From NCBI GenBank assembly GCA_020891255.1, contig BQFW01000011.1, forward strand, positions 620,001-684,000: DNA of 64,000 nt. The letters run 5' to 3'. Source of the DNA: Entomortierella parvispora E1425. Taxonomy: Eukaryota > Fungi > Mortierellomycota. The translations under genes and the position numbers were made by a program. The stretch's first letter is position 1. Each line of letters starts with the position of its first letter. This document shows, one piece after another, positions 1,332-57,879 of the stretch. The notes beneath the pieces were generated by a model. That model searched no databases and was not told where the DNA came from. It was given only the letters and a program-made list of their open reading frames with translations.

Positions 1332-4300
1332 ATGGACCACATCGAAGAGGCTGTTGCTTGTGCACTCAGCCCTAATGCGGATCCTGCTCTGAAGCAGCAG
1401 GTGGGTGTGCATAACTTTGATTCCCTTTTTTTTAAAGAATGATCTTTCACACCTGCTCGTCAATGACGGGTTCATTTCTTTCATACTGCGCCGTGGACGA
1501 GTAGGAGGAGGCGTAGCTTCGACTGTTTTCTGTACATGAGCCGCCCGGTTCTGCAGGCGCGGCACCTCTACAGGGTGCAGTAGAGTTGTGGACAGCGCCA
1601 GTGTAGAGCATATAGGGTCACGGTCAGGATCCGGATCAGGACTTATCCAGGCGAGGATTGGACCAGGATCAGGAGACCATGGCGGCTGTTATAGTCCGGA
1701 CCAGTTCGTGTTTCTCACCCCTCGTCGGACGCGAATCGGTCATGTACATCTCTGGGAGAGACGTTCCTGTGCGACCGTAGTGTCAAGGGGGACAAAGCAG
1801 ATGCAAGAAGCAAACAGCCATCTACCAGCCCTGTTCAAGGATGGGCAGTAGAAAAACCGCCAAACAGATGGGATCGGGAGTAATTAGAGGACCTTTGATG
1901 GACTCAGGAGACCTTGAATCAGCAGGAAGCAATGGCGGTGTCCCTGGCAACAGAAAGTGGGCGATCATGTCCCATCGCCACCATTTTAGTCGGACGAGCT
2001 AGATCCTAACTTTCCGCGCACCCTAATTGCTTTGAACGACGATAGGCTATGCAATACTGCGAGCAAGTCAAGGCGTCGCAGGATGGATGGCAGTCGTGCC
2101 TGACCCTTTACATTCGGGAACCCAAGAGGTAATTCTTCATCCTTCTACATTGTTCTCGCGCGCAGAGTTTGCTTGTCTTTGTTGGTGCTCACTGGGTTGG
2201 GCAACGCGGATGTGCTCTCCTGCGCCAATCACCTCGCGGGCTTTTATCGCTTGCGTCTCCGGTTGTTGTTGCTCGTCTGTCTTTGGAAGGCGGAAATGCA
2301 AAAGGGTCGTGTGGTGCAGCAATTGTGATACTCTGAACGAGATTCGGCAGAACCTAACCCCTTGCATTGTTTGGATACACAGCACTCCAGAAACCCGAAT
2401 GTTCTGTTTGCAAGTCGTCGAAGAAGTTCTTATGACCAGGTAAAGTGTACATCTATAGTCCATGAGAGGATGGAGGGAGGCTGTATCAAAAGGCCCTTCT
2501 AACCCCTAATTTATCTGCACTCTATAGATCTAACACCCTGGACGAATCAAGACTTAACTACTTCCGACAGACATTCATGGACTACATTCAGCGCGAGTTT
2601 GTGAACGGTGGCGTCGATAACACTCTCAGCACTGACCCTTCATGTGAGTGACAAAGCTACCTTATGGAGAGCATCAACCGCGACTATCTACAACAATTCG
2701 ACAGACATTGACTCTTTTTGGGCCCGGTTGTAACCTGTAGATCTCAAGAACAAGTTTGCACATGCCGTCGCTTTGCTCTTTCGCCAAACGTATCTTAAAT
2801 CATGGACTACCTTCTTCTCGGAGATGCTGGCTCTCATAGCACCTTTGCCGCAGTCATCGGGAAAGTCAAACATGAAGATGGTGGATCTGTTCCTTAGGAT
2901 CCTAATGTCCATTGACGAGGAGGTTGTAAATACGCTTACGTCTCGTACCAGTTCCAAGGAAGAAAACACACTCAACATCAACATTGTAAGACGATACTTA
3001 TGGGAGCAGAGGTAACTGGATATCAAACAGACTCAAATCGACTGACTCGCGGACCTTTTGGCCATTCTGAATTTTAGAAAGACCGCATGAGGGAACAAGA
3101 CGTACCTCGCCTCGCAAATGCATGGTATGAGCTCCTTACAGAGTACAAGGAGCGTAGCCTGGACTTTGCAGAGATGCTTCTCCGAATTGTGGGAGTTTAT
3201 GTCGGTATGTTAAATACCCAATTCCTACTTTTTACATGGTACTGGTGTTTATATTCCTTACTAATGCCCGTGTTTCAACTCTATTTCAGCTTGGATCGAT
3301 ATTTCTCTCATTGTCAATGAGCGTTTCGTGTCGGTTATCTATGGCTTTTTGGTGTCCACTTCAATTCGCAACGCTGCAGCAGACTGCTTGACCGACATTG
3401 TGAAGAAGGGTATGAAGCCCTTGGATAAGCTGCAACTTATTAGCATCCTGGGCATCGTCGACGTTCTTCAACAGCTGGATCTTTCTGTATGCTTAACCCT
3501 ACGACTAAATGGTTTCATATTTATGTGGACGCGGATCAAGCTTCTGTACTCACCCACAGCCCTCTTTTATTCCATTACTACCGTAGTCGGATTCTGAATT
3601 CCGTGAAAGAGTCGCTCGTCTCGTCAACAACTTGGGTCTTCAGCTTTGTCAGATCTGGCAGGACACCAACCCTCAGGCAAATTCCAACTACCCACCCACT
3701 GCCAATCCCACCGCTTACACTCATATTTCCCACCTTGTCCCAATCCTCCTTCAGTTTTTGAGGGATGAGGATGACAGTGTGTCCGAGGCTGTGTTCGGTT
3801 TCTTGCGTGAGACCCTCAACATGTTCAAGACTATCAAGAAAGCGACAGGAAGCTTGCCCCAGGAACAAAAGGTGCTTATGCGGCAGATTTTGGAATCCAT
3901 TGTCATGAAGATGAAGTATGGCGAAGACATGGAGTGGGTGTGCGTGGCTATTGCAGGAGGTCAAGAGTCTGTTGGTACTATCGGTGAGGATTCTATTGGC
4001 GACGAGGACATGCTCAACTTCCTGGAGCTGCGCCGGGAACTCAAGCGATTCTACGATCAAATCGCAACCCTTTCTGCCAGTCTGACGACTGCATTCCTGC
4101 ATTCCGCTGTTACTACGACACTCACTACGTATGTCACCGAAAAAGCCTCAGGTGCAACTCTGACATCTGACTGGAGAGACTTGGAGTTGGCGCTGTACCT
4201 GCTTTATCTCTATGGAGAGGCCATCAAAGGAGTTCCTCAATTTGCGATTGTTCCTCCCAGTGTCGGCGCTAACGGAGGAAAGATTGTACACCCCGTCGCT

Positions 4301-6233
4301 CAGCCCGGTGCCCCTCTGACACCCCTCGGCGAGTGTCTCTTTGAGATGGTCAAAAGTGGAGTCTCAAGCTACCCCCACCCATCTGTCTCTGCCAACTTTT
4401 TCGAGATCGCCTGCCGCTATAACAACTTTTTCGATGTGAGGCCTGACTGCATTCCTGATGTCCTGGAGGCTTTTGTGGATGCCCGTGGATTGCATCATCC
4501 CATCGCGGCCAACCGGGCAAGAGCGTGGTACCTGTTCTGGAGGTTCAGCAAGGATCTCAAGTTCAAGTTGACGCCTTACGTGGAAACTGTCCTGAACAGC
4601 GTCCAGGATGTTCTTACAGTGGAGGCGCCTTTGCCTCCGGTGTTGAACTCAGACTTTGATCTGTCGACTTTCAAAGACTCGGCCTTTGAAACCAAGACTT
4701 ACCTCTTTGAGGCCGTAGGTCTTTTGATCTCGCAAGAATCTATACCCGCTCAGCAGCAGTTTGAGTACCTTTCTGTGGTTGTGAACCCCCTCCTGACCGA
4801 GATTCAAAAGAATTTGGAAGCCTGCCAATCGATTCAGCAGAGCTCGAATGGTTGCATCGGAGGAGGTTCAGGAGTAGCAGCAGGATCTCCTCGCCATCGG
4901 GATCTAGAACTTGTCTGGGTTTTGCATCACCGCTTAATGGCGGTCGGAAGTGTCGCCAAAGGATTTCCTGATGTCATGAACATCAAAAAAGCGGCGGCCA
5001 ATGCAGCAGCCAGCGGCGGATCGCCTGTTGTCGGTGGATCGGGTCCCTGCGGACAAATCTTTAAACAGGTAGCCGAAATTACAGTTGTGGCCCTGGAGAC
5101 ACTCTCTCGTTTCGAGGTGATTCGCTCCGCGTCCCGATTTACATTCGGTCGACTCATTAATTGCCTGGGCCAGGACGTGCAGCCATACTTGCCGACACTG
5201 ATCACGGGGCTTCTCCAGGAATGCTCCATCGCCGAATTGGTCGAGTTTTTGCCATTCATGGGACAGGTTGCTCACAAGTTCAAAACGACAATCATGTCGA
5301 TCTTGGATGGATTGTTGTTCCCTCTGGTCCAAAAAGTTTTCTTCTTTTTGAATCAGGTACCCAGTGGCACAGACGAAGCCATGGCTTTGGCAGAACTTCG
5401 CAAGAGCTATTTGGCCTTCTTGATGGGCTTGTTTTCTTCTGAACTGGAGAACGTGCTGATCACGGAAAGTAAGTAATACATGATTAGAAGGGGAGAACGC
5501 CATGAAATCTAGACGACTAACCCTTATTTCCATCCCTTTGTGAACGATCCATAGCCAACAGCCCTCACCTGGATTTGATCATGCAGAGCGTGCTTCACTA
5601 TGCTCAGGATATGTCGGATGTTCCCGTTAGCAGGATGGCATTTGGAATCCTACTCAAGGCTGTCAACTCCTGGGGTGGCCAAGGCGAGTCTTCAGCAGCG
5701 GCCATTCCCTCGTCAACTTCAGCAGCGACAATTGCTAACGGCGGCGGTGGTATCACCAAAAAGACAATTGCATCAAGGATCAACGGCTCTAACGGCGCCA
5801 CAGGACCCAATGGCGAGAAGATGGAGGCGCCAGGATTTTATCAGTTCATGTACGAGCACATCTTGAGGATCACGTTTGAGGTGCCGATGAAGAGTAACTT
5901 TGATCTCGCAGACGGACAGTCAGTTCTTGTCCTAGGCGAGATTGCAGGTTTGCAGAAGGCCATGGCCTTGAAGCAAGGAGAGGCTTTCCTCACGTTTTTG
6001 AGTCAGGTGTACCTGCCTTCGATCCACTGTCCAGCCGAATTGGCGCAGGAGTATGCACAGGCTCTTCAGCAGTTGGAGGCCAAGCAATTTAAGAAATATT
6101 TCCAGGTAAGAAAAAGGAATCAAACGAAGCACAAGAGTGAATCATAAAAGGCCACGGGTGCACTGAACTCATAACGATCGCTTTCTATCCATGCTGTTCT
6201 CCATAGGCATTTATTCAACGCTCGAGATCATGA
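1332..6233 (+). CDS. LOS1: Exportin-T (tRNA nuclear export receptor), multi-exon
   Basis: Exon 1 1332-1400 MDHIEEAVACALSPNADPALKQQ; exon 2 2046-2128 AMQYCEQVKASQDGWQSCL; exon 3 2383-2439 TPETRMFCLQVVEE. Later exons include LKNKFAHAVALLFRQTYLKSWTTFF and the 3632-5476 HEAT-repeat ORF; the last exon is AFIQRSRS* (6207-6233). Matches karyopherin-beta exportin-T N- and C-terminal patterns. Confidence 0.9.
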
Positions 6234-7195
6234 TGATTATAAAGAAGGACATCCTTTTCTTCATATTTCGTATTCTAGCACCACTTCCACCACTACCCTA
6301 AAACAGATTCATCGCACATTTCTCGTTATCTTATCTCTGAAAAAAAACACATGAACATCTTCATATTATCCTACATATAGCACCATGGGTAGTCTAATCG
6401 CCATGAGTAAGCACAACAGTAGTGGCGTCATGCTCTCCATCGATAGAAACAACCCCGCTTGTCCCCAGCGGTGAACTCCGCGCCTGCCTGGGGCATCCGG
6501 GGTCAACGCCCTCTCCTTTTATTTTCCCTGTGGATGGTGATTTTTCTTAAGAGAAAATGTTTTGAGCGCGTGAGCGCGGCGCGCATTTCAGGAACCAACC
6601 CCCGGAAACTTCTCTCATGCGCCAGTTCATGAACATCAGGCTTACCGACGGTGTTTTCATCTCTCTTTTTTCCTCTGTGTCCCCTTCTCCGACTCTTTTC
6701 ATTGCCCCACCATCGCGCAAGGAGGAAAGCGCGGCAGACTTTGCCCGATACCATGCTCATTAGTTCACCAACAGCAATGCATTCAATTTGTACATGTGCA
6801 TACAAATGAAACTGATGCCTAACTGTCAGGACCCTTGTGTTGCTGACGTGTCACGCTGCGTGTAGTAGGAAGGATCTCGGTCGCGAGAATGGCCAGATGG
6901 ATCTTGTTGTCAACGGGAAAAGGGCACATGTGCATCTGCAAGCCGAACTTTTGAGTTCCAGCCCGAAGCTCAAAGAACCTAAAAAAGCTTCGGGAGGCAA
7001 AGAAGCATGGGAGAAACAAGGTATGTCCTTTGCTGTGGTGCATGATAATTGCGCTTTGTGTTAAATATTGAGCCCAGCATCGTCTCGCCAATGCCATAAA
7101 AGCAAAGTGGTCACCAACTCTCTGCCCACCACCTCTTCCTTTCCGCTTCCTTCATCATAACCGTCCAAAAAGAAACAAAAAGACTGAGCCAAACC

Positions 7196-10100
7196 ATGAC
7201 CCGAATGGACGATGATCCGCAGCGTGGTCGAGGAGCCAAGCCCTTTAGGGTCAAGGTGTCATTGACCGGCAGTATCGCCCAAGTCCTGAACGATTACCCA
7301 GATGGAGCGCAGATTGCCCGTGAACTACTCCAAAATAGCGAGGACGCTGGCGCGACTAGGCAGTGGTACCTTCTTGACCACCGTACCCATTCGTCCCAAA
7401 GCGTCTATTGCAAAGGCATGGAACAGTACATGGGGCCCGCACTTCTGGCCGGGAACGATTCATTGTTCAAAGAAAAGGACTTCGATTCGTTGCAGAATTT
7501 TGGCAACAGTGGCAAGAAAACCGACTACGAAAAGATTGGCCAAATGGGCATAGGCTTTAACAGGTAACGTCACGTCAGGAAGAGTATGATGTGCTATTAG
7601 TGGGCGCATCCAGACTGACACTCTTCGTTCACTTTTGGCACCGGGTCTTTTTTATAGCGTTTACCATATGACGGATTGCCCATCGTTCCTGTCTCACGAC
7701 CAACTTGTAATCCTGGAGCCTCATGAGAACATTCTGAGGCATGGCGGAATCCAGGGAGACTTTGTTTTTGAGCGTGAAGGCCTCGACCGGTACGCTGACC
7801 AGATTAATCCCTTTAAAGCAATGGACGACCGCCTTGATCTTTCGAAACCATACAATGGCACAATCTTCAGGCTTCCCTTGCGCACAAAGGTTCAGGCCGC
7901 TACCTCCCAGATATCCAACCGAGCGTACTCTACGCAGCAGGTACAATTAATATCCGAAATTGTTAATCAGGAGAAAGAGTTCTGAAGAGCGACTAATCGT
8001 TGCTCTGCCACCAACAACATAGGCTCGAGATATGTTGATGATGTTGAAGGAAGATGCTCTCGAGTGTCTTCTATTCCTCAAACACATTGAGCAGATCCGA
8101 ATTTATGAAAGAACGGACAGTAGCAAGGAACCGGTCCTTCTATTTGGCATTGAAATCGAAAATGCCGAAGAGATCCGGGAAGAGCGAACGAAGTTCATAG
8201 AACGCCTCAGGAGCTTCTCCAATGACTCCTTCAGCACAAAGTGCTCTGGATCGACTCTTGAATCCTTCATTCGCCCACAGTTCAAGATCAGGGACGAATA
8301 TGGCAAAGAAACAGTTGAAACCTGGCAGGTCACCAGCATGCTTGGGGACATGATAAAGGCACGCCAGCAAATGGAAGAGCAATTTAAATGCGACACCTCT
8401 GGGCACAGATTGATTCCCTGGGTTGGGATCGCATCTCCGGTAGACTCTGCCATCAAGATTAAGGACCCTCGTCTGTTTTGTTTCCTTCCCATCGGACACA
8501 ACGCCCCTTTCCCAGTCCATATCAATGGCCATTTTGCGGTCAAGCCAAGTCGTCGAGAAATCTGGACCAATCAGGGAAACGATATCTCGGAACAAAGCAA
8601 TGCGCGAATCAAGGCTCACTGGAACGAGTATATGATGATGGAGCTTGTTCCTAAAGTGTATGCCCGCTTCTTGGAGAACATGGGACTTGATCATGGCCCC
8701 GATTACAGCTTGTGGCCGGAGCAATCGAATGAGGGAATACCTGCTCTTTTTCATGGGATGCAGACCCGAATGTTGACGGAGGCTATCAAGGAGAAACGAA
8801 AGATATTCTTTATTGGACCCCCATCAAGCAAAAAAGCCGTTGCCTTTGAAAATTGCAATGTTGCCGATCAGATTCTTGGGCAGTCCACATTGCTTGTGGA
8901 TATTCTTCACCAGATGACAGGGGTGGCAATGGGCTTGCCTGACCGCATTCATGCATCTATCAGAACGGTCGCCAACAATATGGGACTGCAAAAGCGACTT
9001 CTCAATCCTGCTCGAGTTAGAAACCTACTATTGCAGTTTGTAGAACTATTCTCGAAGGTGTCATCCTCAGCGGCCAAGTGTCAGACTTTGGAGTACTGCT
9101 CGGGCGATCAAGATATCGAGGCACTTGAAGGACTACCACTCTTGCCTATGGCCGATGGCACCTGGGTCAACTTTAACAAGGAGGCGAGAGACAGTCGGTA
9201 AGTTATGATCTTGGTCATTGCTGAAGGTATATCATTTTCATAGCACCAATTGACACTTACCTTTGTTTCATCCTTGTTTTTCTCAAGCTTCTTGGTCAAC
9301 GACTTGGAGTACGAGATACTTAGCTTCTCAAATGCCGGTATTGTCCGCTTCAACGAACCCAATTTCCCATATTGGATCATTCAGGATCCAAAGTATGGGA
9401 CTTTCCTCACGCAGAAGATGCCTCATTCTGTCTTTGTGCAGAAAATACACCAATCGTTTGCCAACCACTACAACGAGGGAATAAGCGACTTTCCTTCCGA
9501 AAAATGGATTTCGCAGCTTTGGCGCTATCTCAAGACACATCAACATCTGATCTCTCACCTGGAAGGACTGCACCTATTGAGAACCACTGGCAGCAACCTC
9601 GCACCTCTAGACAAAGAAAATCCTGCTTTGGTTTTTAATGGACAGGACTCTCAAACAGCCTCCATTCTTAAGGAAACCTTGGATATCATGGACCATCAAC
9701 TCGTCTGATCTTGTCTCTGTGGCAGGGAAATACCTCGTCAATATCTCAAGTGTATCTGGAGTCCTCTCGATACTTTGCTCAGTATCAGCATCCAAACTTT
9801 CTACTCTGGATCAAAGCCATGGCAAAGTTCTCAGCCAGTACATACAACATCACCTGTCATCAGGACAGCAATTGTCGCAGGACCAGCAGGCTTCTCTTCG
9901 AAAGCTACCAATTTTCTACGGCTACAAAGACTCGGAGCTTAAGTCGTTCGATGCGTTGTCCATGGAGCACGGGTCGGCCTGGTATATTTGCGAAGACTTT
10001 TCGTTCTCAGACCTTCCATGGGTACCATCGGGGATGACTCTCTTCCAGCAGAGTCAGGATCTTGAGATCGTACTGAAAAAGGTCCTTGAAGTCCCAATCT

Positions 10101-13100
10101 TGAAAGAACACATGTATTGGGTCCATTTACTGCCCAATCTACCAAAGATGCCAGAGGCAGAATGGGACAAGATTATTTCCGCCTTTGCCCAGAAGTTCCA
10201 GTCCTATTCGGAGCGTTACTCCTTTAAATCGATTCTCCAAAGTCTAGAATTCGTCACTGTCGGTAGCCCACTTTCAGGAACTCAAACCAAGCGAATTCGA
10301 CCACAACATGCCATCAGCTCAAAACTAGGGAATATATACTTGCAGGAGGAGCTCTACTTTTCTAAAGGAATCTATGCCCAAGACCCAATATCGACAATGC
10401 TGCAGTCGTTGGGGATGACATCCTCTTTTCGCGAGGAACTAGCAAGAGAGCGCATCCTGACTATCGCGGGAATTTGGGAAAACGAAGCACCTTCCTCTAA
10501 TACATCTGTCACTGTTATCGCAGCTGCGCTCTTCAGCCGGGTACAGCGACTATGTTCGGAGCAGACTCTGTCGCAGGATCTTACCAACGTGATACAAAGC
10601 AGCAGGTGGATCCCTGGATCGATATCAACAAACCCTTTCAACTTCAGGTTGTATACGTCCAAGGAGTGTCGACCTTCCGACGACAGAATATTGCTAGGAG
10701 ACACGATGCCTGCTGTAGACATCTGTATTCCAAGTCCAACATTGAGAAGAACATTTGGCTGGGATCAACCACCTCCACTCGATAAGGTCCTCAAGCGTCT
10801 TTTACAGCTGATTGAGCCTGGAAGCGAAAAATCGGAACTCTCGGAGAAATATTTGACAGCAATCTATCTTGAACTTCTTGGCCGCATATACGATCCGGTA
10901 GTGCTTGCAATGATCAAGGAGACGGTTGACCACCAAAAATGGATTCTAGTGAACAGAGAGCTCTATGCCACAGATTGCGTGGCCTTTAGTATGCCATCAT
11001 TCCTGGCACCGGAATCAGTGCAGCTTCCATCAAGCGCATTGGATCCATTATTCAAAGCTCTAGGGGTTGCAGATTCTGTGGAAGTGAGCGATTTGCAGCG
11101 TGCAATCCGTGAGCTAGGTGCACAATATGGAGATGACACACCCTTGCCAGAGCATCATGCCACGCGTGTCATTAAGATCCTGGAACATATTGCTGCCACT
11201 CCGCCTGACTCCGAGGAGATTGGGGATCTCAAAGACCTTCTAATCCTCAACAAGGACTTGAAGCTATGCAGGATCGACGAAATCGTATATGACGATGTGA
11301 ACGAGGGTCAAGGATCTCCAGATATTTGGACTGATTCCCAGGAAGAGACGTACAACAAGGCTAATTCGAGAATCTCTCATCATGTCGCCACGAAACTCAA
11401 TATCACAATGCTCTCGACACTATACTGGCATTCCAAGAAAGACTCGGATATCCAACCGTGGGCACAGCAGGAGGATATCGCGGTTCGAATCAGACACATT
11501 CTCAACGACTATGACCCTTCTACTATTTTCCAAGAGTTCCTTCAGAATGCGGAGGATGCGGGAGCTACCAAGTGCGTTTTTATGCTGGACGATCGCTCAT
11601 ATGAATCACAGAGTATCCTCTGCCCTGAAATGGCGGCATGTCAGGGGCCATCCCTAATAATCTACAACGATGCCGAGTTCACCAAAGACGACTTTCTTGC
11701 GCTTTGCAAGATTGGTGTAGGAAACAAAAGTAAGAAGCGCCTGGTTTAATTGAAATATGCCTCTTCCATAAAGCCCATTTGATTAATTCGAGATTTTTTT
11801 TCTCTATTTCATTAGGCGGGGATTTCTCAAAGATCGGTCGTAATGGTCTCGGTTTCAACTCTGCCTATCACTTCACTGACATCCCGAGCGTGGTTAGTGG
11901 CACCCATATCGGATTCTTTGATCCTCATAGGGCGTATCTTCCAAAATTTCGAACGTCCAAGGGCCTGATGGCTGAGGGGGGCATCCGCATTGACTTCAGG
12001 ATATTCAAAGGGCAAACGTACGCCGACCAGATGGCACCTTACAAGGGCTTGTTCGGCTGCGATATGGAAACTCACTTCAAAGGCACTATTTTCCGGTTCC
12101 CCTTGCGTACTATGGAAATTGTTCCTGCAGAGCTGACGACAGATTCGTTCCAAAAATCGAGCGCCCCGATCGGATTACCGACTTTCATGTCATTCTCGGA
12201 CCTACTGTATTGTCAGCCGTGGAGGGACTTAACATGGACGAAATGCGCCTACTTCCCTGATAATCTAGAGATGCCAAAGGATTTTAGGGAGGCCTATAAA
12301 ATAGGCGGAGGAGCCAATGTTATGGATTGTACCCGTCACCTCCGTAATTTGGTCAAATTAGCCCCGGACTGCAAAACCAAAGACGAAAAGATCACATTTA
12401 CGAGGATGCTCTTCAAAATCTATGCGAAGTTTGAGGAGAGTCAAACTGCGATCCAGAAAACTATAGCGGCGCAGCTTAATACGACTTTAGAAGGTATCGC
12501 CTTCATTCTGAACGGAGCCCATTTGGACCCGGCTGTGAAAGCATCTTGGCGAAAACCTAGTGAGCTGATGCTGGATATCCAATTCGACATGAACGATCAA
12601 CAGCCCGTCCATCCGAGTCTGTTTGCTTTCAAGACTTTTCTCAGGACAATAGGCGTGCAAGAGATCAAGGAGGTCGTAGGAGATTATTCGGTCAAAGTTT
12701 CAAAGGGTCGAGATGTTGGAGGTGCCTTGGAGAGAGCATTGACGGAATCGTTCGAGAAACAGGACTCGGTGACGGGCTTTATGGATGTCAAGTTTACCTT
12801 CTCAGACTTAGGCAGTGGATCCGTGAAATCAGTCCTTGCCCACAAGTTTGTCCTTGCTCACACGAGCGAGCATTTTTTGGACAGATTTACTGGCCTCTGG
12901 GCCAAGTTGACTCCCGATGATCCAGAGGATCCAAGGCTGACAGTTGTGAATATGCCGAAGGTGACCAAGCCCGAGGAGGGACACGATGTTTTTTGGGGAA
13001 TCCTGTATTATCTCTACACGGATAACTTGATTCGGACGAATGGGCCTCCTTCTGCAACAGCATTGCCCGAGAGAGCGAACGAATACAATGACAAGGATGC

Positions 13101-14019: not shown

Positions 14020-17000
14020 TTACAGGAGCCCAGAGCTGCGGAGGTTTAATCGCTGGACAATCGCGTTCACCGCCAAGACAATTACCCGCATCTGTTTGGT
14101 ATCCTGTTGCAGAAAGGGAAGCAAGAGAGAGAGGGGAGACGCTTCAAGTTAGCGAGCGAGTCTTTTTTTTTTTTTTTAAAAAAAAATCGATTAAGGAAAA
14201 GGCGCAATGTTTGTCTCGCCATGGTGGGACAAGCCACGTGCGATAGAGCGAAAAAAGAACTCTTTTTGGTTTCCCTGTCTGCTTGTGTCACCACATGTCC
14301 AGTGCCTTGCCCCCCCTTTGATAAACCATCGGATCTGGGGAACCCAAAAAAAAAAAAAAAAAAAAAAAAGAAAGCCACTTACTGTAGCGTGCGTGAAATG
14401 GACATAGACCTGTTTCGACGTATCCTTGCATTGCCCCAAGAACTCTTCATGGATAAAATCCGTCGCAGAAGCATAGTCGTTCTCGCCCTTGTAGGCTGGG
14501 AAGTGATCACGAAGCAAGGAGCCCGATTCGAGCTTGCGTTGAAAAATGTCAATCTTGTTCAGGAACAAGATGAACGACGTCATCTCAAACAGCTTGTGGT
14601 TCGCAATCGAGTTGAACAGCGATAAGCATTCGGCTAACCGGTTCTGACGCTCGTCATCCTCACACGGTTGGTCGTACGCAGACAATGCACACATGAAGAT
14701 AATGGCATTGACATCGTCGAAATAAGGCCTAATATTTTTTTTCAAAAAAAAAAAAAAAAAAAAAAAAAAAATAGTGAGAAAACAGATACGAGTGAAACCT
14801 TGTTGACGACGAAGGTATATATGAATACAAAGTTGAGGCTGTGGATCTTTTCCTTGTCAGTCCCCTTCGTTTATCGCCACATGGCACGCCGACTTGAGTT
14901 TCAATGAGGGAAAGGCGCTTGTTCCATCTATCCCGGTCCCCAAATTGATTTCCATTTGGGCTGAAGAAACAGCTCGGTTTTGTTGATCTCCTCTGCCATG
15001 TGGCGGGCGGGGGCAATGTCGTCACTTGTCTTCCCCCCCCCCCTTTTTTTTGACTCCGCCCAGGTGCAGCTGCAGCTGATCCATGCATGCCTGTTATTGG
15101 GAAGGTCCGTTTTGAAAAGTAGACAGGGATTGCCCGATTTCAACTTCAGCCATACAGAAGAAGCGGCCGTTCGTTTGTTTGTTGATTGTTGTTGTCGCCA
15201 CGCGAGAATGTGCCCTGGCATGAGGTCAGCCAAAACAAAAAAAAAAAAAAAAAAAAAGGAAGGATGGAAGAAATACTTACGCCCAGTATTTTCGTAGTGA
15301 CTTTTGTCCGCCCACATCGAAAATCCTAAGGAAAGGTTGGCGTGTACTGGATGTCAGTAAAAAGAGAGGCGAAAGAGGAGTTTGATTCTTCAGGAAAGGC
15401 GAAAAAGACTCAATCCTTATATTTTTTTTTTACCTGTAGTTGACTCCATCAATGTTGAACAAATGTTCAGACACGGCCAATGTCCGCACGCGCGCCTGCA
15501 AGATATCGTCGTCCGTTGGAATGTAATTTGGCTCTGCTATCCGATCAATTGAGTCCAGGAAGCTATTGAAATAAAAGGACCGTTAGAATAAGCAGAATTG
15601 CACCATTTTTGTTGTTTGCAAGACAAAGGGCAAAAGGGAAATAATGGGTGACAAGGGTCCAGGATACACAACTAACTCCCTCAAGAAGGAAAAAAAAAAA
15701 AAAAAAAGAGTTGCAGGCTATTCAGAAAAGGATGAGGTTGAGAGCACTTACTATTTTGCAGAGTCCTGAAGATTGAGGCTTCCACCAGTCCTGAAGGTCT
15801 GTTTGATTCCCTCATCGTTCCAAAGGGCTTTGATGGCCGGCACCATCTCCAAAAACATATCCGTCTCGGCCTTTGCATCCGTGATCTTGCGTGGGATAGC
15901 AGGGTTCGTGAATCCAAGGGATGTGATCGAGTAGCGCTTCAAAGTCGTCTCCAGTCTCATCACAGTCTCCAGGTGAGCAATATTTTCTGGGTGCTCCAGT
16001 GGGATGTTAGATCGTTGGAGTCCATAGGACAGAGCCTGAATGGCCTTCATAGCATTCAAGTGGACAACACGGCGGTACGTTTGGCGTTCAGCATCCAAAC
16101 CCTTTCGGCCATAGAGCAGCTTCAGTTGCTTTAGCACAGTTGTCTTGCCCGTCTCCGATGGTCCTATTGGAAGATAGAAAACACAAAATGCAATCGTGAG
16201 TAAATTTGCGCATGGCTCCAAACTCCCCTTCCGTTTTTCTGCATAGAAGGAATCGAAGAATAGAACATCGTCTTGGAAACTGAAGGAGAGGACAAAAAAG
16301 ACCTCATCCCAATCCTACAGGCACCATTTACACTCTTTTTCTTTTTTGGCCTTTGGCCGATATTGAAGGTTTGTCCCCGCCCGCCCGATTAAGTTTGTCC
16401 CCATCCCTTCTGCTCCCACATTTTTTTTTTTTTTTTTTGTTTGCTCTGCCCACTCCCATGGATCTCCTTCAAGAGAACATGGCGATCGATCCTGCCCTCC
16501 CACACGGATGCAGATCAAGGCAGCGGGAAGAATAGTAACAAAGACAGAACCGTGCAGATCTCGTCTGCCTTCGGGCAATAAACATTGTCCAGTGTAAAAG
16601 AATCAATTCAAAAGTGAACGATGAGAGCATCGAGCGTCACTGGAAAGAAAAAGAGAAATCTCTAATTTGGTCCATCCATTATTGTTGCCCAGTGAGAAGG
16701 AGCGGTAAGTGGCAAGAAATAGACAAAAGACGAGCTCGATAAAAAGGTTGAAAAGTGAATTGAGAGCGGGGCGGACCAAGGCCGCGTGCGACCGCTGCTC
16801 TCGCCATTCGACTGTTTTTCAACTCTACTCTCTAGTCCGATCTGGGAGGACAGCCGTCTCTCCTCGACACAGTGCCCACTCCAATCTCCCTTTGAGTGTG
16901 TTGTGTGTTTGTGTGTCATGGCTGCAGTCATTGCGTAACAAAACCGGTTTTTTGCAGGTTGCCAATCCGGCAGCAAGGTCGCACACATGTACTTGTCTGC

Positions 17001-39622: not shown

Positions 39623-39848
39623 TCAGACTTCACCAAACTCGTTTCTTTTTTTTTTTTTTTTTTTTTTGCGACCTTCCAGCTCTCCTCCTCCTCCTTGTAC
39701 ACTACAAACCGCCATCTCAAGAACAAAATAATAAAAAAAAAGAGGATATTGCCATTGGTATGATATGCCTGATCTTTGTCGAGGTGCTGCAGTGGAAAAA
39801 GCATTGATACAAACAGCGATGCATCGTCCTGCATCATACTACCGCGCC

Positions 39849-40695: not shown

Positions 40696-41589
40696 GTTTC
40701 AGCTTGTCAGCCCGAACACTGCATAGGGTATGACAGTTTCTGGGCTCTTGAGCAAAGAATGTACTTCTTTCCTCCCTTGGGTGCTTGGAATGTCTTTGGA
40801 CAGCCCAAGGCAGACAAGAGGCTGGATCCGTTACTTCTTGGGATTGTCTTGCGCTTCATCGACAAGTGTCGCGAGAACCTGGGTGGATGCTGCTATATGC
40901 TTGCATTATTAGCAAAGTTTGGGCATCCAGCATGTTTTCATTCTCTATTCTTTTGGTAGGAAATAGGAAAATCCAAGACGATCCAAAGATGGTCTTTTGT
41001 ACTAAGCCATGAATTTCAATTCAATAGCCCTCTGTGAAGGTGTCATCACTTTGTACCCTCTCATTCTGTGCAAGAGCCAGTAAAATTGGTGGCGTGCAAA
41101 GTACTGAGGTGACAAAAAACATATGCTTCAAGGGGGAGGAATGCTGAAAAAGATGGGGTACAGAAAAAGGGGGACGCCAAAAAAGATGGAGAGGGAGGAA
41201 AGAAAGAAGGTCAAAAGAGATCAACAGCTTTCCAACTTTCGTTGCACATATAAAGTAGTCTATCCACTCAAGAATATGTACTGACCCACAGCCAATCCAT
41301 CTTCAAGACTCCAGGAGTGCAACAGAACTCACATCACTCACATCACCTTCTGCCAGACCTTTATAAACTATCCCGGTAACCGTCCCAAAGAACTAAGAAT
41401 TCTCACAGAACGACCTACCCTGCACGCAACATCTATTGCAAGGCAAGTCATGCACCAGGCGACTGTGATCTGACCTCCAGCAAGTGACGACTATTGGCGT
41501 CTCCAAAAGTCAATGCGCTTCGATCCACCTAACAATGATGCTCAATGCTCTCTCAAACATGATTGTTGCAGAACAGGCGTCATCAAATC

Positions 41590-42738
41590 ATGACAACATG
41601 CGCTCGTCTGTGTGTGCAGTTGGCTGGAGGATTGTTTATTGGTGAAAACGCATCGCTGAGACTGTCTGATGATGCGAGATCTATATTGGATGAAATCGTT
41701 CCTTCTCAGTCTAGCTTTGTGCTGGAAACTATGAACAGGATACTACTGCACCGGAACGTTGATGGAGCGAAGTTCGACTGGATGCCTGAAATTCATACCA
41801 AGGCACGGCGTATCACCCGACTAGAACGCTCTGAGCTAGAGAAGAGTGCACTCAGTAGGCACTCCCTGCCGAGTACAGATTTCTCGATTATGCTCTATGA
41901 TGTCGGCGTTCTGTACTGTGGTACCATCTTCAAAACTGGTGGTGTGAAAGCTTGGGAAGATGCTGGTGTGTTAGTCGTCGAGGTCCTATACACGGATTAC
42001 TGGAGAAGTTGGTCGGCTTATGCAAACGAGTGGGATGCTTATGAAAAAGCATGTCGCAACATCGCATCCTTGCCTGATAGTGTGGTGGAGCTAATCAAGA
42101 TGGGAGTCATATTTAACTCCTGCATAAGTGCTGTCGAGCGGAGGTCCAACAAAACAGGGTATCTGTCCGGCATACACGACGTCATCCACACATTGACATA
42201 CAAGTCGTTCGAGTCACTGGGCTGGAGTTTTGCAGCTATCTATGCCAATGGACATGGCTTACACGTTGAGGCCGATAAGTTAGTTTTTGCTGGGTGGCTT
42301 ATCCCCCTTGTCCACGACGTCTTTGACTATCCCAGAGACTGCTATGAGGAAAACTATGGGAGTAGTTGCATGCTTCTTCATGGGCTTAATGAAGATGGCT
42401 TTTCGATAGGCTGCGCCGTATTGTTTGCAGTATGGAACAGCTTAGAGTCTTTCAATGACGATACAGCACGCTTGTTCAAGTTTTCCATCAGCACAGGAGT
42501 GGCTGGCAATCTGTCACTCCCTCGCTACAATGGAAAAGAACAGCTGATTAACTGCACGACCAGCGGCGTGTGGAGCACGAAAGTCAAAGCATCTGCCATC
42601 GACCTCATAAGGCATATGACTGGTGTGTCTATCCTCTGGCCAGAGAATATCGCTCTATCTACAATCAGCGACGCTACATATGTTGATTATCACAGGGCGC
42701 TTGTTGTTTGCTGTACGAATCTACCGCAGAGCAGGTAG
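41590..42738 (+). CDS. Intronless 382-aa protein, probable class I isoprenoid/terpene-synthase-like fold with non-canonical motifs
   Basis: First ATG at 41590. HDVFDYPRDCYEENYGSSCMLL resembles the NSE/second metal-binding motif; GNLSLPRY resembles the C-terminal RY motif ~70 aa later; YKSFESLG sits in the sensor position. TATA-like TATAAA at ~41248. Confidence 0.6.
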   Translation: MTTCARLCVQLAGGLFIGENASLRLSDDARSILDEIVPSQSSFVLETMNRILLHRNVDGAKFDWMPEIHTKARRITRLERSELEKSALSRHSLPSTDFSIMLYDVGVLYCGTIFKTGGVKAWEDAGVLVVEVLYTDYWRSWSAYANEWDAYEKACRNIASLPDSVVELIKMGVIFNSCISAVERRSNKTGYLSGIHDVIHTLTYKSFESLGWSFAAIYANGHGLHVEADKLVFAGWLIPLVHDVFDYPRDCYEENYGSSCMLLHGLNEDGFSIGCAVLFAVWNSLESFNDDTARLFKFSISTGVAGNLSLPRYNGKEQLINCTTSGVWSTKVKASAIDLIRHMTGVSILWPENIALSTISDATYVDYHRALVVCCTNLPQSR

Positions 42739-43199
42739 CCAGCCTGTGCATCGAGTGGGCAAACGAAATAATCAATTCCACTCTCATCAGAGATAGAACT
42801 ATTAGTTACGTCAAACGAGAGAACACTCAGTGCGGAACGTGGGCCTAACTTCTATCAAGTTCTGACCCTGTCCTATTTTTTAGATAATAGCCCCATTCAT
42901 GGTCTCAGAGTTCTCCGATGTGTTCCTCCTCTCACTATCTGTGCCTCACTTACAATATTGGTCTTCATAGTCTTTCACCACTTTTTTCGATTTTTAGTTG
43001 AATACGAATAGTGTGTAATAGGCACAGAGGGAGAATGCAAGGGGTTGGAATGATAGGGGTTTGGGTTGGTGGGATCATAAACGCTAGGATTGTAGACACG
43101 CGTTGCATAGAGCTTCGGCTCCTGAATCATATTACGTGGGGTGTGTGCGGGGCAGGGGGTCACCGTCAACGTGAGTAAGTCTGGGCACGAGTAATGACG

Positions 43200-44939: not shown

Positions 44940-45929
44940 TCACGGCAAGAAAGCGGGTACGGTCCCTTGGCGGGATCTTGACTGGATGCAAGGCGCGCAC
45001 TTGCTCGAATGGACGGATGGACAGACGCGTCGATGGCCAATTTTAAGGGGCACTGCCGATGTGGGACTGCTTTTCGTTGTTGACCCAAACGCGAAACGGG
45101 CAGTTGCACGGCCAGGAAGCACAGCTGGGGCGTGCTCTGGAGGAGGGGCAGCCATGGAGGAGGGGCGCTCTTGGCGACAAGAGGCTTGAGAAGGACGAGC
45201 ATACTCCAGAGAGTGAGCCTGCTGTTGGGCCACTTCAAAGGCACAGCTGGTCTTGAAAGGCAGGAGGTGCCCGAGGAGCCAGGGCCCTGCTTGCAGAGAG
45301 GTGGAACTTGTGTGTTTGGGAGAGTGCACTCAAGCCCAGCTACTCTGAGCAAGAAACGTTCTTGAAGTGGGGCTGGCACCGAAGGGAAAGAGCTTCTTCC
45401 CAAAGGGCACAGTTATCTGCCAGGGAGGCAGAGTCATGAAGACCTTGAAGGGCAGAGAGGCGGTCTGAAGGGACTGCGCCTCACAAAGTCTTGCACGGGC
45501 GCCAAGGAGACAAACAGCGACAGAGACTCGGCAAGCAACGTGGTCCGCTATCCACCTGCAAAGTAAACGTCGAGTGGCAAGAAAACGGAAAAGGAGCATG
45601 CTGCAAGGGGGCGTCAGAGGCTGAAAAGGATGTAGGTTGTGTTTGTTTGGCTGGATTTCAAAAAAGTACCTTGAAAACACGGGCTGTGCTCTCGCGTCTG
45701 AAGGGACGCGGATGTGGTGCAACCTTGGGTCATGGTGGTTGGTGGAAGGATCATGGTCCTTGTGGAGTATGAAGGTGGAGGTGGACTGTGGGTGGAGGTG
45801 GACTGGGATTGAGGGGGTGGTGGTGGTGAGAGGGAGGAGAAAAAGAGAGAGGGCGAAAAAGGCGAAAAAGGCGAAGCAGATAAACCGAAAAAGCAGACAA
45901 AAAAAAAAAAAAAAAAAAAGCAGCCACAA
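44940..45929 (-). pseudogene. Low-complexity coding relic; part (45126-45228) is repeated at 63897-64000
   Basis: ORFs 45330-45929 and 44940-45329 are one frame broken by a single stop. The segment gctctggaggaggggcagccatggaggaggggcgctcttgg...ctgctgttg recurs at the right window edge. Confidence 0.4.
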
Positions 45930-46026
45930 AAAAAAAGGCAGCAGAACCTCATCTTGTCCTCATCCTCCCACCGCTGACACCAACCTTCCCTGAGGCTGCT
46001 CCGCGTCGATCTTGATGGGCTGAGAG

Positions 46027-47020: not shown

Positions 47021-49230
47021 TGTGGTAATCAAGATCTGATGAGGTAGGATTTATTTTGATGCATGACCGAAGGGGAAGTTCAGAGATGCAAAACCAAAAA
47101 AAAAAAAAAAAAAAAAAAAGAGCGAGAAACCACTCAACGAGGACTCATGGTGATCAAAGAGAACCTACTGAGAAAAGGAGGGACAGGACATCAAAACGTA
47201 TGCGAAAGCGCTTGATGATTCCCACCTACCCTTCTGTGCTTCCAAGCCTCTTCCCGAGTACCAACGTTCACCCAAGAACATGTGGTTGCCAACCACGACA
47301 AGTGACTGACCCACAACCATGCTTCACTTGTAGATTTTTTTCAACCCACTTTACTCATTTTGCTACAGGAGGACAGCTCCACTGGCAAGAAGCGTAAAAG
47401 GAAAGATTTTATACATGGTGGAGATGTGCCAAAGGTGCAGCAATAAAGTTGATAAGGAAGCAAAATCAATGTATTGTGCTTGAGGCGCATGTCACTAGAT
47501 CATGACTCGCGAATGACATGTAAAAAGGAATGAGTAGTCAGGACAATTCTTCCGTTATCGCACTGAGTGGAGTTATCGCCGGCTTTGCGCCATCCCATAA
47601 CCTCCATGTGGAAGATTTTGTTCCTGAGTCCTACTCCTCAAAGTCGCCATTGTTGTTCCTTGCCTTCTTTTCCTTCTTGGATGGAGAGAAGAGAACATAC
47701 GCATTAGGTCGCTTTATATGAGGCGGCGTGCTTGGTCGCTCCCCAAAGCTGAAGGGTGAATATGCATCATTGTCACCCTCGTCGTCATATTCGCCATCGT
47801 AGTCATCATCACTGACGGGCTCCAAAGCATCGGGAACATCAGTCGCATACCATCGCGAGCGTTCCTATTGCAGACCATAAAATAACAAACTTCAGGTCTC
47901 TCATCGTCGCGGCTTTGTCCCAGATCTTGAAGTGTTTCGCAAACGATGCGAATGACACGTGCTCCGCTCGCTCGCCATGCTCTCTAAACAGCTTTTTTCT
48001 GCTTTCCAGCGAGAATCGTTACACAAAAACGAAAGAAGGGCCAATCAACTCAAAGAATCAAGAAAGTGATTCTCTTCGACAAGAAGAAAGGAAGCAGGCT
48101 AGTATGCGCGTTGTTGGGAAAGAAAAGAAAAAGCTGTACACATGTTAACAATACATTCGTTCGTTCCAGTGTTACTCGGAATCATTTGACGATGGGCGAG
48201 GAGAAGAAATAAAGGCACTTCAGCGCAAAGGCCTGACGACTCCAAAACTGCGAGTACATGTCGAGAGTTTACGCTGAACGACATTGTCACGACTACCTCC
48301 GGTCGGCGTGGACCAGGATTGTTAATCCGTGACCACACGCTAGATCTAAAAGGAGCCGTTTTGGCAGACAATGCGCTCTATTCTGTCACTCGCCTTTTGT
48401 GCATGATCCGTGAGTAGAACGTCATGACAACTCCATTTACGCGAGCACATGTCACGCGGCCCTGCTGACGGCTGAGCATGTCGCGACCACCTCCCCGGTC
48501 GGCATGGACCGTAACCACATGCTGGACCTGAGGGGGCCAGGTCGCTTTGACAAGTCATGTTTGCATGCGCCTAGTGCTGAAAGAAGTCCATTACCTTGTC
48601 GAGTGAGGAGTTGAGAGGAGCAGAGGTGCCAAGGTGTGTCCATGCAATTGGCAGCAAAATGCAATAGATTCAGGATTTAACGATTCTTTATTTCCACGCA
48701 CATCTATCTTCAACTCCGACCTTTGGTGCTGCTTTCGCAGCCTTTTCTCTCATGAGAACTACAGTTGACCCGTCTACGCGCGCATACGCGTTCCTTCTTC
48801 CTCGCCCACCACGCTCCCCACGCTCGCCATTACTCATTACCAGCGACAACCCTTCGCATTATTGCGTTCCGCCTTTTCATCAGCTCTTATCATCTGATCT
48901 TTTACGCATCCTCTGAATTGTGCCTCTGATGGGATTACAAGATTGGTTCCCCTTTTTGCGCTACGGCAAAAAAATGAAAGGTCAACCGTGACGAAGCCGC
49001 TGAAGAATGCTACAAGAACCTTGACGCACTCGAGCAAAGGGAATCATCAAACGCTTTCGCATACGTTTTGATGTCCTGTCCCTCCTTTTCTCAGTAGGTT
49101 CTCTTTGATCACCATGAGTCCTCGTTGAGTGGTTTCTCGCTCCTTTTTTTTTTTTGGTTTTGCATCTCTGAAATTCCCCTTCGGTCATGCATCAAAATAA
49201 ATCCTACCTCATCAGATCTTGATTACCACA
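47021..49230. mobile_element. Non-autonomous DNA transposon with ~200 bp terminal inverted repeats and TA flanks
   Basis: 47021-47223 is the reverse complement of 49039-49230, with about 3 substitutions plus a poly-A length difference. Termini are TGTGGTAATC...GATTACCACA, with TA immediately outside both ends. No transposase ORF inside. Confidence 0.85.
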
Positions 49231-57267: not shown

Positions 57268-57879
57268 ATGAGCGCATGCATGAAACTTTCGTTAATTATC
57301 AGCTTGACCCTCTTCATGTTTCCAACCATTGGTGCAAGTGCTGGCACTGGTGCTGATGTTTTGAATGAGTTTGGTCATGAAGCTAGCCCGCACCCCACCA
57401 CCTGTGTTGATGCCAATCGTGATGGCATCTGTGACCGCCTTCGTCCTCCACGTCCCTGTGTTGATGCCAATCATGATGGCATCTGTGACCGCCCTCCCCC
57501 TCGTCCCTGTGTTGATGCCAATCATGATGGCATCTGTGACCGCCCTCCCCCTCGTCCCTGTGTTGATGCCAATCGTGATGGCATCTGTGACCGCCTTCGT
57601 CCTCCACGTCCCTGTGTTGATGCCAATCATGATGGCATCTGCGACCGCCGCCCCCCTCGTCCACCTCCCCGTCCTGAATGTGCGAATGAGGCTGGTCGTG
57701 AAGCTCGTCGTAAAGCTGACGATGCAAAACGTAGGCTTGATGCATTACGAGATGCTACCGCAATGGCCAGAGCTGATCCTCATCATGTCTATACGGCTGA
57801 TAGCCCCGTGCATTTTATCAAGGATGCCAAAGCGGAGTTCATCAGATGGAATATGCAAGCGAAGAGCCAGGGATGCTGA
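57268..57879 (+). CDS. Secreted protein with five CVDAN[RH]DGICDR repeats and a helical Cys-bounded C-terminal domain
   Basis: Intact 203-aa intronless ORF with signal-peptide-like MKLSLIISLTLFMFPTIGASA. Repeat starts are 57403, 57457, 57508, 57559 and 57613 (54/51/51/54 nt). Confidence 0.8.
   Translation: MSACMKLSLIISLTLFMFPTIGASAGTGADVLNEFGHEASPHPTTCVDANRDGICDRLRPPRPCVDANHDGICDRPPPRPCVDANHDGICDRPPPRPCVDANRDGICDRLRPPRPCVDANHDGICDRRPPRPPPRPECANEAGREARRKADDAKRRLDALRDATAMARADPHHVYTADSPVHFIKDAKAEFIRWNMQAKSQGC

Follow-up and report, generated by a model that had tools for sequence, protein, structure and literature searches.

The gene described here lies on the forward strand of a 64,000-nucleotide (nt) stretch of the fungus Entomortierella parvispora E1425 (assembly GCA_020891255.1, contig BQFW01000011.1, positions 620,001 to 684,000), which we call the window and by whose coordinates features are given, and belongs to a family of cytosolic proteins of about 419 amino acids (aa), unnamed and almost confined to Mortierellaceae. 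Our reading, to which we assign a probability of roughly 0.6, is that the locus is a native gene of a Mortierellaceae family, that its product has the class I terpene-synthase fold and is a candidate non-canonical terpene cyclase, and that the allele carried by E1425 has been freshly broken. The family was previously unstudied, and sequence searches do not recognise it as a terpene cyclase; its substrate, metal binding and catalysis are inferred.

The fold is the first piece of evidence. AlphaFold2, run on the family alignment, returned confident all-alpha models: a full-length homolog reached a predicted local distance difference test (pLDDT) of 84.4 and a predicted template-modelling score (pTM) of 0.89, with residues 364-395 helical at a pLDDT of ~97, and the open reading frame (ORF) of the window gave an all-alpha model with a pLDDT of 78.9 and a pTM of 0.84. 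A VIA structure search with the window model returned class I terpene synthases in 49 of the best 50 rows, covering residues ~65-349; a chain-elongating geranylgeranyl diphosphate synthase appeared only at rank 50, and terpene cyclases scored above chain-elongating prenyl synthases by ~3 Z units. The match lists include the non-canonical enzymes BcABA3, SkABA3 and AsR6 and the N-prenyltransferase DabA, with ABA3 as the top or tied-top structural match. The top rows of Foldseek were trichodiene synthase, CotB2, squalene synthase and polyprenyl synthases, individually weak matches from the same superfamily, while the ESM Atlas returned SQS_PSY by shape and the TRI5 and Terpene_syn_C_2 clusters, at 0.93, by language-model features. 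The class I call is common to two independent models and agrees across Foldseek and both ESM Atlas searches, so that the terpene-synthase-like fold put forward in the first-pass annotation, for which an AlphaFold and Foldseek comparison had been proposed as a check, is largely borne out: the predicted structure is an all-alpha class I alpha-domain whose top rows belong to the isoprenoid-synthase superfamily. Pfam, NCBIfam and the PDB sequences, searched with the window protein and with the family profile, gave no usable match, and the family profile against all PDB sequences gave 0 matches at E values up to 10. On these models, the family adopts the class I terpene-synthase alpha-helical fold, diverged beyond sequence-based recognition.

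The conserved motifs follow the helix order of this fold. All counts were taken over 22 family sequences (21 at positions 122-139), and the helix limits, for the window protein and its homologs, are those of the predicted secondary structure of the models. Predicted helix D (residues 122-133, followed by a short helix) starts with W122-E123-D124 (41953-41961), in which W and E are found in 21/21 and D in 16/21 sequences. At its C-terminal end, in the DDxxD place, stands [D/E]131-x4-D136-Y-W-R139 (41980-42006; EVLYTDYWR in the window), where position 131 is D in 18 and E in 3 sequences, D136 and W138 are kept in 21/21 and R139 in 20/21; the DDxxD motif itself is absent from the window protein, as had been noticed before, and from every member examined. 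Two residues separate the predicted G1 and G2 helices (195-208 and 211-221), and at this break stands the K-x-x-E-S element K205-S-F-E208-S209 (42202-42216; K in 20 and R in 2, E in 21 and D in 1, S in 21 and T in 1). Canonical enzymes carry at this kink the Arg-Asp-Gly effector triad (PMC11234867), of which K/R205-x-x-E208-S209 is, in the model, a candidate analogue.

The acidic block H242-D-x-x-[D/E]246-Y-x-R-D250-C-Y-E-E-N-Y (42313-42357), which reads HDVFDYPRDCYEENY in the window, falls at the NSE/DTE position, at the C-terminal end of the predicted helix 228-245 (helix H), with a further helix at 247-252. Within it H242, D250 and E253 are found in 22/22 sequences, D243 and E254 in 21/22, and position 246 is D in 16 and E in 6. 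The resulting HDxx[D/E]xxxD has the same i, i+4, i+8 register as (N/D)Dxx(S/T)xxxE, but other residues at all three ligand positions. Finally, the Arg-Tyr (RY) pair of G-N-L-x-x-P-R312-Y313 (42505-42528; GNLSLPRY in the window; R in 21/22, Y in 22/22) follows the predicted helix 290-309, between predicted helices J and K, and comes exactly 70 residues after H242, where a distance of about 70 aa had been estimated. Near this pair, the structural alignments end with offsets (model to chain) of 314 to 316 for aristolochene synthase, 317 to 343 for epi-isozizaene synthase and 310 to 292 for CotB2, by which the known RY pairs of these three enzymes fall on 312/313. Aromatic residues and His make up 20 of the 78 invariant positions, against a background of 13%. 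The peptides quoted in the first-pass annotation (HDVFDYPRDCYEENY, GNLSLPRY, KSFES and EVLYTDYWR) all lie where it had placed them, and its assignments of an NSE variant, a Lys sensor and an RY pair are consistent with the predicted helix order, with the near-invariance over the 22 sequences and with the end-offsets at RY.

Read onto a class I enzyme, these residues suggest the following mechanism. The protein would have a helical cavity lined with aromatic residues and bind a prenyl diphosphate at its mouth, where a divalent-metal cluster would hold the diphosphate through H242/D243, [D/E]246 and D250 on helix H, in the NSE/DTE register. Further metal ligands may come from helix D, either [D/E]131 and D136, or the invariant E123 as in the ABA3 cyclases, or both. 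R312/Y313 and K/R205 would hold the diphosphate directly; the RY pair makes this contact in all class I cyclases, including AsR6 (PMC8457177) and ABA3 (PMC11695735). Ionisation would then give an allylic cation, cyclised or quenched inside the cavity. With a His ligand and an all-carboxylate triad, the metal preference may differ from plain Mg2+.

Several cyclases with the class I fold are likewise invisible to sequence methods, namely those of classes IB (BalTS), IC (AsR6) and ID-IF (PMC11234867) and the ABA3 cyclases (PMC11695735), and in such non-canonical classes the residues that bind diphosphate and metal at the canonical site are private to the class, and the genes often lie outside clusters (PMC11234867). 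The closest known system is the ABA3 type (BcABA3, RuABA3 and SkABA3; PDB 8ZAC-8ZAG), which has homologs in more than 100 ascomycetes and bacteria (PMC11695735). Like the family, ABA3-type enzymes have the class I fold without DDxxD, NSE/DTE or a Pfam terpene-synthase match, a variable N-terminal extension and extra C-terminal helices. The landmarks of BcABA3 (E124, R202, Y242-H250 and R312/Y313; PMC11695735) find counterparts at closely similar positions: Glu at 124 in ABA3 and 123 in the family, the basic residue at 202 and 205, the NSE site at 242-250 in both and RY at 312-313 in both, so that the spacing E124-Y242-R312 is 118/70 residues and E123-H242-R312 is 119/70. The invariant E123, one residue off E124 of BcABA3 in sequence position, is by this spacing a candidate counterpart of the Mg-chelating Glu of ABA3, with D131/D136 as the alternative putative Mg ligands. 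The two systems differ at the NSE site, which in ABA3 is Tyr/Lys/His and binds no third metal, whereas in the family it is an acidic His/Asp/Asp-Glu site within the invariant cluster 242-254. ABA3 also binds Zn2+ at a Cys4 site carried by a long loop near the C-terminus, which the family lacks: in the C-terminal ~140 residues C387 is the only invariant Cys, the others being at 178, 251, 260 and 275. The family has instead C251-x8-C260-x3-H264-x10-C275 just after the acidic motif (42340-42414; all four residues 22/22), which one might speculate to be a structural metal site or a cavity lining. As a possible Cys3His metal site it would resemble neither the zinc site of AsR6 nor that of ABA3. The phyletic ranges differ as well (ascomycetes and bacteria for ABA3, almost wholly Mortierellaceae for the family), and neither the family profile against PDB sequences nor an exhaustive search found sequence homology to BcABA3 or SkABA3. 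Because of this absence of homology, the acidic NSE site and the lack of a Cys4 zinc loop, we file the family apart from ABA3.

The canonical class I enzymes (PF19086, PF06330 and PF03936; for example selinadiene synthase, 4OKM, and trichodiene synthase, 1JFA) share with the family the alpha-bundle, the helix order, the G-helix break, the acidic register on helix H, the RY pair 70 residues downstream and an aromatic-rich core. They differ in that DDxxD is replaced in the family by [D/E]x4D, the NSE ligands by H, D/E and D, and the sensor Arg by Lys. The E1425 genome has a single Pfam-recognisable terpene synthase, 100% identical to EMPS_10920 (contig 15, 846992-847594 region; locus 1240-2256), which matches Terpene_syn_C_2 with 25.5 bits, is encoded in a single open frame and carries the motifs DDCFEE, NLIWSWSKE and PRY (HPRYGW). 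With hhalign, the family profile gave no meaningful alignment to it, and a residue-level mapping of the motifs by sequence was therefore not possible. The AsR6-type humulene synthases (class IC; PDB 7OC4) share the class I fold, private motifs that are not recognisable by sequence and the RY pair (R350/Y351; PMC8457177). In AsR6, Lys289 stands at the NSE site in place of the third Mg2+, and the N-terminus has a Cys3His zinc site (PMC8457177); the family has neither, since no conserved Lys occurs in residues 242-256 of the 22-sequence alignment and the N-terminal Cys4/Cys8 are not invariant. The motifs of class ID (D(N/D), ND and RXXKD) and the two long Asp-rich motifs of class IB (PMC11234867) are also absent. 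AsR6 and classes IB and ID-IF, which came to light through structures or models and not through a hidden Markov model (HMM) and often lie outside gene clusters (PMC11234867), show no sequence similarity to the family, either with its profile against PDB sequences or in the exhaustive search.

A number of observations weigh against a cyclase. Helix D carries [D/E]131-x4-D136 at its end and no canonical DDxxD/E, and helix H the HDxx[D/E]xxxD variant and no canonical NSE/DTE motif; the motifs were placed on helices by means of the predicted secondary structure and of the points where alignments end, rather than by superposing structures. Neither the window protein nor any of the 22 members has a Pfam match at E values up to 10. 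The seven homolog loci have unrelated, non-syntenic housekeeping neighbours, with no prenyl-diphosphate synthase, P450 or other tailoring gene among them. Several family copies are pseudogenes, so that the function is dispensable. No terminal branch in the tree is longer than that of the window allele (0.34, where the median is 0.12), which also has the highest number of private changes at invariant positions.

Some of these points would fit a protein that uses the terpene-synthase fold for other or no chemistry, as an amine or aromatic prenyltransferase (as DabA), a non-isoprenoid phosphate-ester enzyme or a scaffold or binding protein that has no catalytic activity. In its favour, the two canonical motifs are missing, a biosynthetic neighbourhood is lacking, Mg2+-dependent cyclases do not typically have a His in their metal motif, and a common fold by itself shows no function. 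We nevertheless consider such a protein unlikely, with perhaps one chance in four, since the most conserved block lies at the NSE/DTE position with three metal-ligand side chains at i, i+4 and i+8, the RY pair that contacts diphosphate in all class I cyclases is invariant, the aromatics are enriched two-fold among the invariant positions, as expected of a carbocation-stabilising cavity, and the cyclases outrank the chain-elongating synthases in the structural search. A further step, which we take tentatively and at somewhat less than even odds, is that the candidate terpene cyclase would represent a new class of non-canonical class I enzymes, of the rank of IB-IF or ABA3 and largely of Mortierellaceae, with a His/Asp/Asp(Glu) triad, a Lys-Glu-Ser effector, perhaps a transition metal and a terpenoid new for these fungi.

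The family is lineage-restricted and under selection. A word search found 25 relatives with 53-69% identity to the window protein, all annotated 'hypothetical protein', from Linnemannia, Mortierella, Entomortierella and Podila, with three from an assembly labelled Apophysomyces ossiformis; the gene had been called an orphan, a term that does not hold in the strict sense, since at least 25 homologs exist, though all unnamed and confined to this lineage. An exhaustive profile search of 1.84 billion protein cluster representatives returned 11 clusters only, all close family members, with no distant or bacterial relative. The phylogeny of the best matches, one of the checks proposed in the first-pass annotation, resolved three well-supported paralog clades within the lineage, each spanning several genera, with the window copy in clade A; the three clades predate the genera. 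Pairwise dN/dS was 0.15-0.29 in 21/21 pairs of seven coding sequences (CDSs; for this calculation, the L. gamsii ortholog was entered with its two exons joined), which shows that the family is protein-coding and under purifying selection. Turnover is high all the same, with tandem duplicates, a Mortierella alpina copy broken in four frames and the broken allele of the window.

This last allele deserves a closer description. The plus-strand ORF runs uninterrupted from the ATG at 41590 to a stop at 42736-42738 and encodes 382 aa, as first reported, or 391 aa if read from a TTG further upstream; its end is not the natural one. By alignment it is a truncated copy of the ~419-aa protein, since homologs are typically 419 aa long and the match of the window protein to them ends after residue 374. 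Codons 1-374 (41590-42711) encode a variable N-terminal part of ~65-80 residues and then the predicted class I alpha-bundle core. Relative to a second isolate and to all homologs, alignment and translations show one base missing between 42711 and 42712, directly after codon 374 (tgc, 42709-42711), and the reading continues out of frame as CTNLPQSR to the premature stop (42712-42738). The displaced C-terminus, with two conserved helices and a CIEWANEIINS box, follows in another frame: 44 codons at 42714-42845 and a stop at 42846-42848, thus 42714-42848 in all. The two pieces were analysed separately. The displaced piece is 80% identical to residues 376-419 of the Linnemannia gamsii homolog (E 5e-22), against 69% identity to the best homolog before the break, which implies that the break is very young. 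The first-pass annotation had overlooked both the frameshift and the close spacing match to ABA3-type cyclases.

Public sequencing runs, here X1, X2 and X3, were compared with the window over 41300-43000. An assembly or polishing error, with E1425 really carrying an intact 419-aa gene, would be conceivable given that the assembly is Nanopore-based and that the site has a short C/T-rich context, but we hold it to be very improbable: the assembly was polished with Illumina reads (PMC8759367), the missing base at 42711 lies outside any homopolymer, and a contig built independently from X1, the sample from which the genome probably derives, matches the window over 1701 bases at a word depth of 83, the deletion included and without any indel at 42711. 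Run X3, from another sample and study with the label E. parvispora, is ~94% identical and has an extra 'A' behind 42711, the sole indel between 41590 and 42848, so that the second isolate has an intact ORF of ~419 codons. The frameshift is real and strain-specific. It exchanges the conserved last 45 residues, with their two helices, for 8 unrelated ones in a gene that is single-copy in the E1425 genome. In ABA3 cyclases the extra helices at the C-terminus are required for activity, and a BcABA3 that is naturally shortened at its 3' end is inactive (PMC11695735); by this analogy the window allele is probably non-functional, and we take it to be, most likely, a null or crippled allele of very recent origin.

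The gene structure bears on the origin of the locus. Run X2, from the same sample as the genome, consists of patchy 200-nt contigs at a depth of ~2 and is probably the RNA-seq library of E1425; one of its contigs covers 41300-41440 and joins to 41570, skipping 129 nt. This spliced contig, from the second of the strain's own runs, is evidence that the gene is transcribed. Its 5' leader exon, as far as the contig covers it, spans 41300-41442, where 41300 is not a mapped transcript start, and is followed by a GC-AG spliceosomal intron of 129 nt in the 5' untranslated region (UTR), at 41443-41571. The splice joint has 2 ambiguous bases, and with the cut moved by 2 it reads AAG/GCAAGTCAT...TTGTTGCAG/AA (slashes mark the cuts). 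The orthologous loci of Entomortierella chlamydospora and L. gamsii have the same GC donor and AG acceptor and the CTAAC branch box, and a 5' leader intron is common to three genera. The ortholog of L. gamsii (627-1991 of its locus) contains in addition a GT-AG intron of 105 nt inside the CDS, after residue ~185. This CDS intron is in frame and stop-free; the window gene lacks it, as do the intronless homolog CDSs examined at four other loci. The description of the gene as intronless is then right for the window CDS and wrong for the gene. The contrast once drawn with core genes that all have introns was overstated, since Exportin-T, the sacsin-like gene and MFS nearby have open exons of 490-700 codons and the canonical terpene synthase is a single open frame.

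Horizontal acquisition or retroposition had been offered to explain an intronless orphan among relics, and the uninterrupted CDS, the non-syntenic homolog loci and the patchy distribution of the family, with its pseudogenes and tandem duplicates, would be compatible with it, as would the copies of the Apophysomyces-labelled assembly, which nest within a Mortierellaceae clade with a dS of only ~0.7-1.0. For the E1425 genome this origin is largely refuted and we regard it as highly improbable. The GC-AG intron in the 5' UTR and its branch box are conserved in two other genera. The gene has a GC content of 0.48 and a third-position GC content (GC3) of 0.52, within the range of the neighbouring host genes (Exportin-T, sacsin-like, Tim17, MFS and Med14). 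No terminal inverted repeats (TIRs) and no inverted or direct repeats bracketing the gene were found in a search around it, which returned only poly-A/T tracts. DNA similarity to the orthologous loci of other genera starts at 41414-41423, takes in ~175 nt upstream of the ATG and the CDS, and ends within 15 nt of the stop, so that the unit conserved across genera is leader plus CDS, 1.44 kb. No relative outside the lineage occurs among the 1.84 billion representatives, and the three old paralog clades are each common to several genera. Because of the conserved intron, the matching composition, the absence of bracketing repeats and the lack of an outside relative, a recent horizontal transfer or retroposition is disfavoured, and the locus is a native spliced nuclear gene of E. 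parvispora E1425, not an intronless insert. A mobile-element cargo was considered and ruled out, there being no TIRs or repeats around the gene and the conserved unit being just leader and CDS. The poly-T/poly-A tracts (20-25 nt) lie at 39638-39696, ~2 kb upstream, and at 45859-45948 and 47070-47130, 3-4 kb downstream; they are the source of the only 'inverted repeats' of the region and are probably meaningless.

These results matter for the view of terpenoid chemistry in soil fungi. Mortierellaceae are among the commonest fungi of soil and rhizosphere, are plant-associated and are considered poor in such chemistry. In Mucoromycota, surveys with HMMs detect hardly any sesquiterpene cyclases, and the E1425 genome has a single canonical terpene synthase. 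A hidden, selectively maintained family with the cyclase fold and up to three paralog lineages per genome would, if our reading is true, represent unseen biosynthetic capacity. It would also be a new natural solution for binding diphosphate and metal on the class I fold, adding to the terpene synthases that only structure can recognise. Intact and frameshifted alleles under one species label provide a ready-made natural genetic contrast. On the side of annotation, the family carries the label 'hypothetical protein' everywhere and is mis-modelled in at least one genome.

The homolog loci showed further particularities. A biosynthetic gene cluster is ruled out, the seven homolog contexts sharing nothing; a PF02458 acyltransferase and a BBE-type FAD oxidase near one M. 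alpina copy have a pseudogene beside them and are not found at the other loci. A fusion to an NLR effector domain, suggested by a 1563-aa protein of M. alpina (GCA_019788775.1), was rejected as a merged gene model over 9.8 kb (1737-11511), in which the family copy broken in four frames (1981-3252) is joined to a downstream NLR-like gene with ARM_5 and NACHT. The annotated protein of E. chlamydospora (locus 6576-6910) starts at an internal Met and has 372 aa, although the locus aligns with the window over the conserved leader, the intron and the ATG further upstream; probably the annotated model lacks part of the N-terminus, or else the upstream part of this copy is damaged.

The assembly labelled Apophysomyces ossiformis (Mucorales; GCA_014839865.1) holds an intact tandem pair at 10001-11260 and 14914-16173, a unit of ~4.9 kb with 90% nt identity. 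Its copies nest in clade A of Mortierellaceae, and their dS to Mortierellaceae genes (~0.7-1.0) is about that between Mortierellaceae genera, which suggests that the assembly is mislabelled or contaminated, or that a transfer between subphyla took place. A literature search on the label found no paper, and a DNA search of the E1425 genome with the methyltransferase neighbouring the pair found nothing; the GC content of its flanks is 41%, a value not decisive on the label. Elsewhere in the window, a 203-aa ORF at 57268-57879 gives a weak EF-hand-like repeat signal (PF13202, below cut-off).

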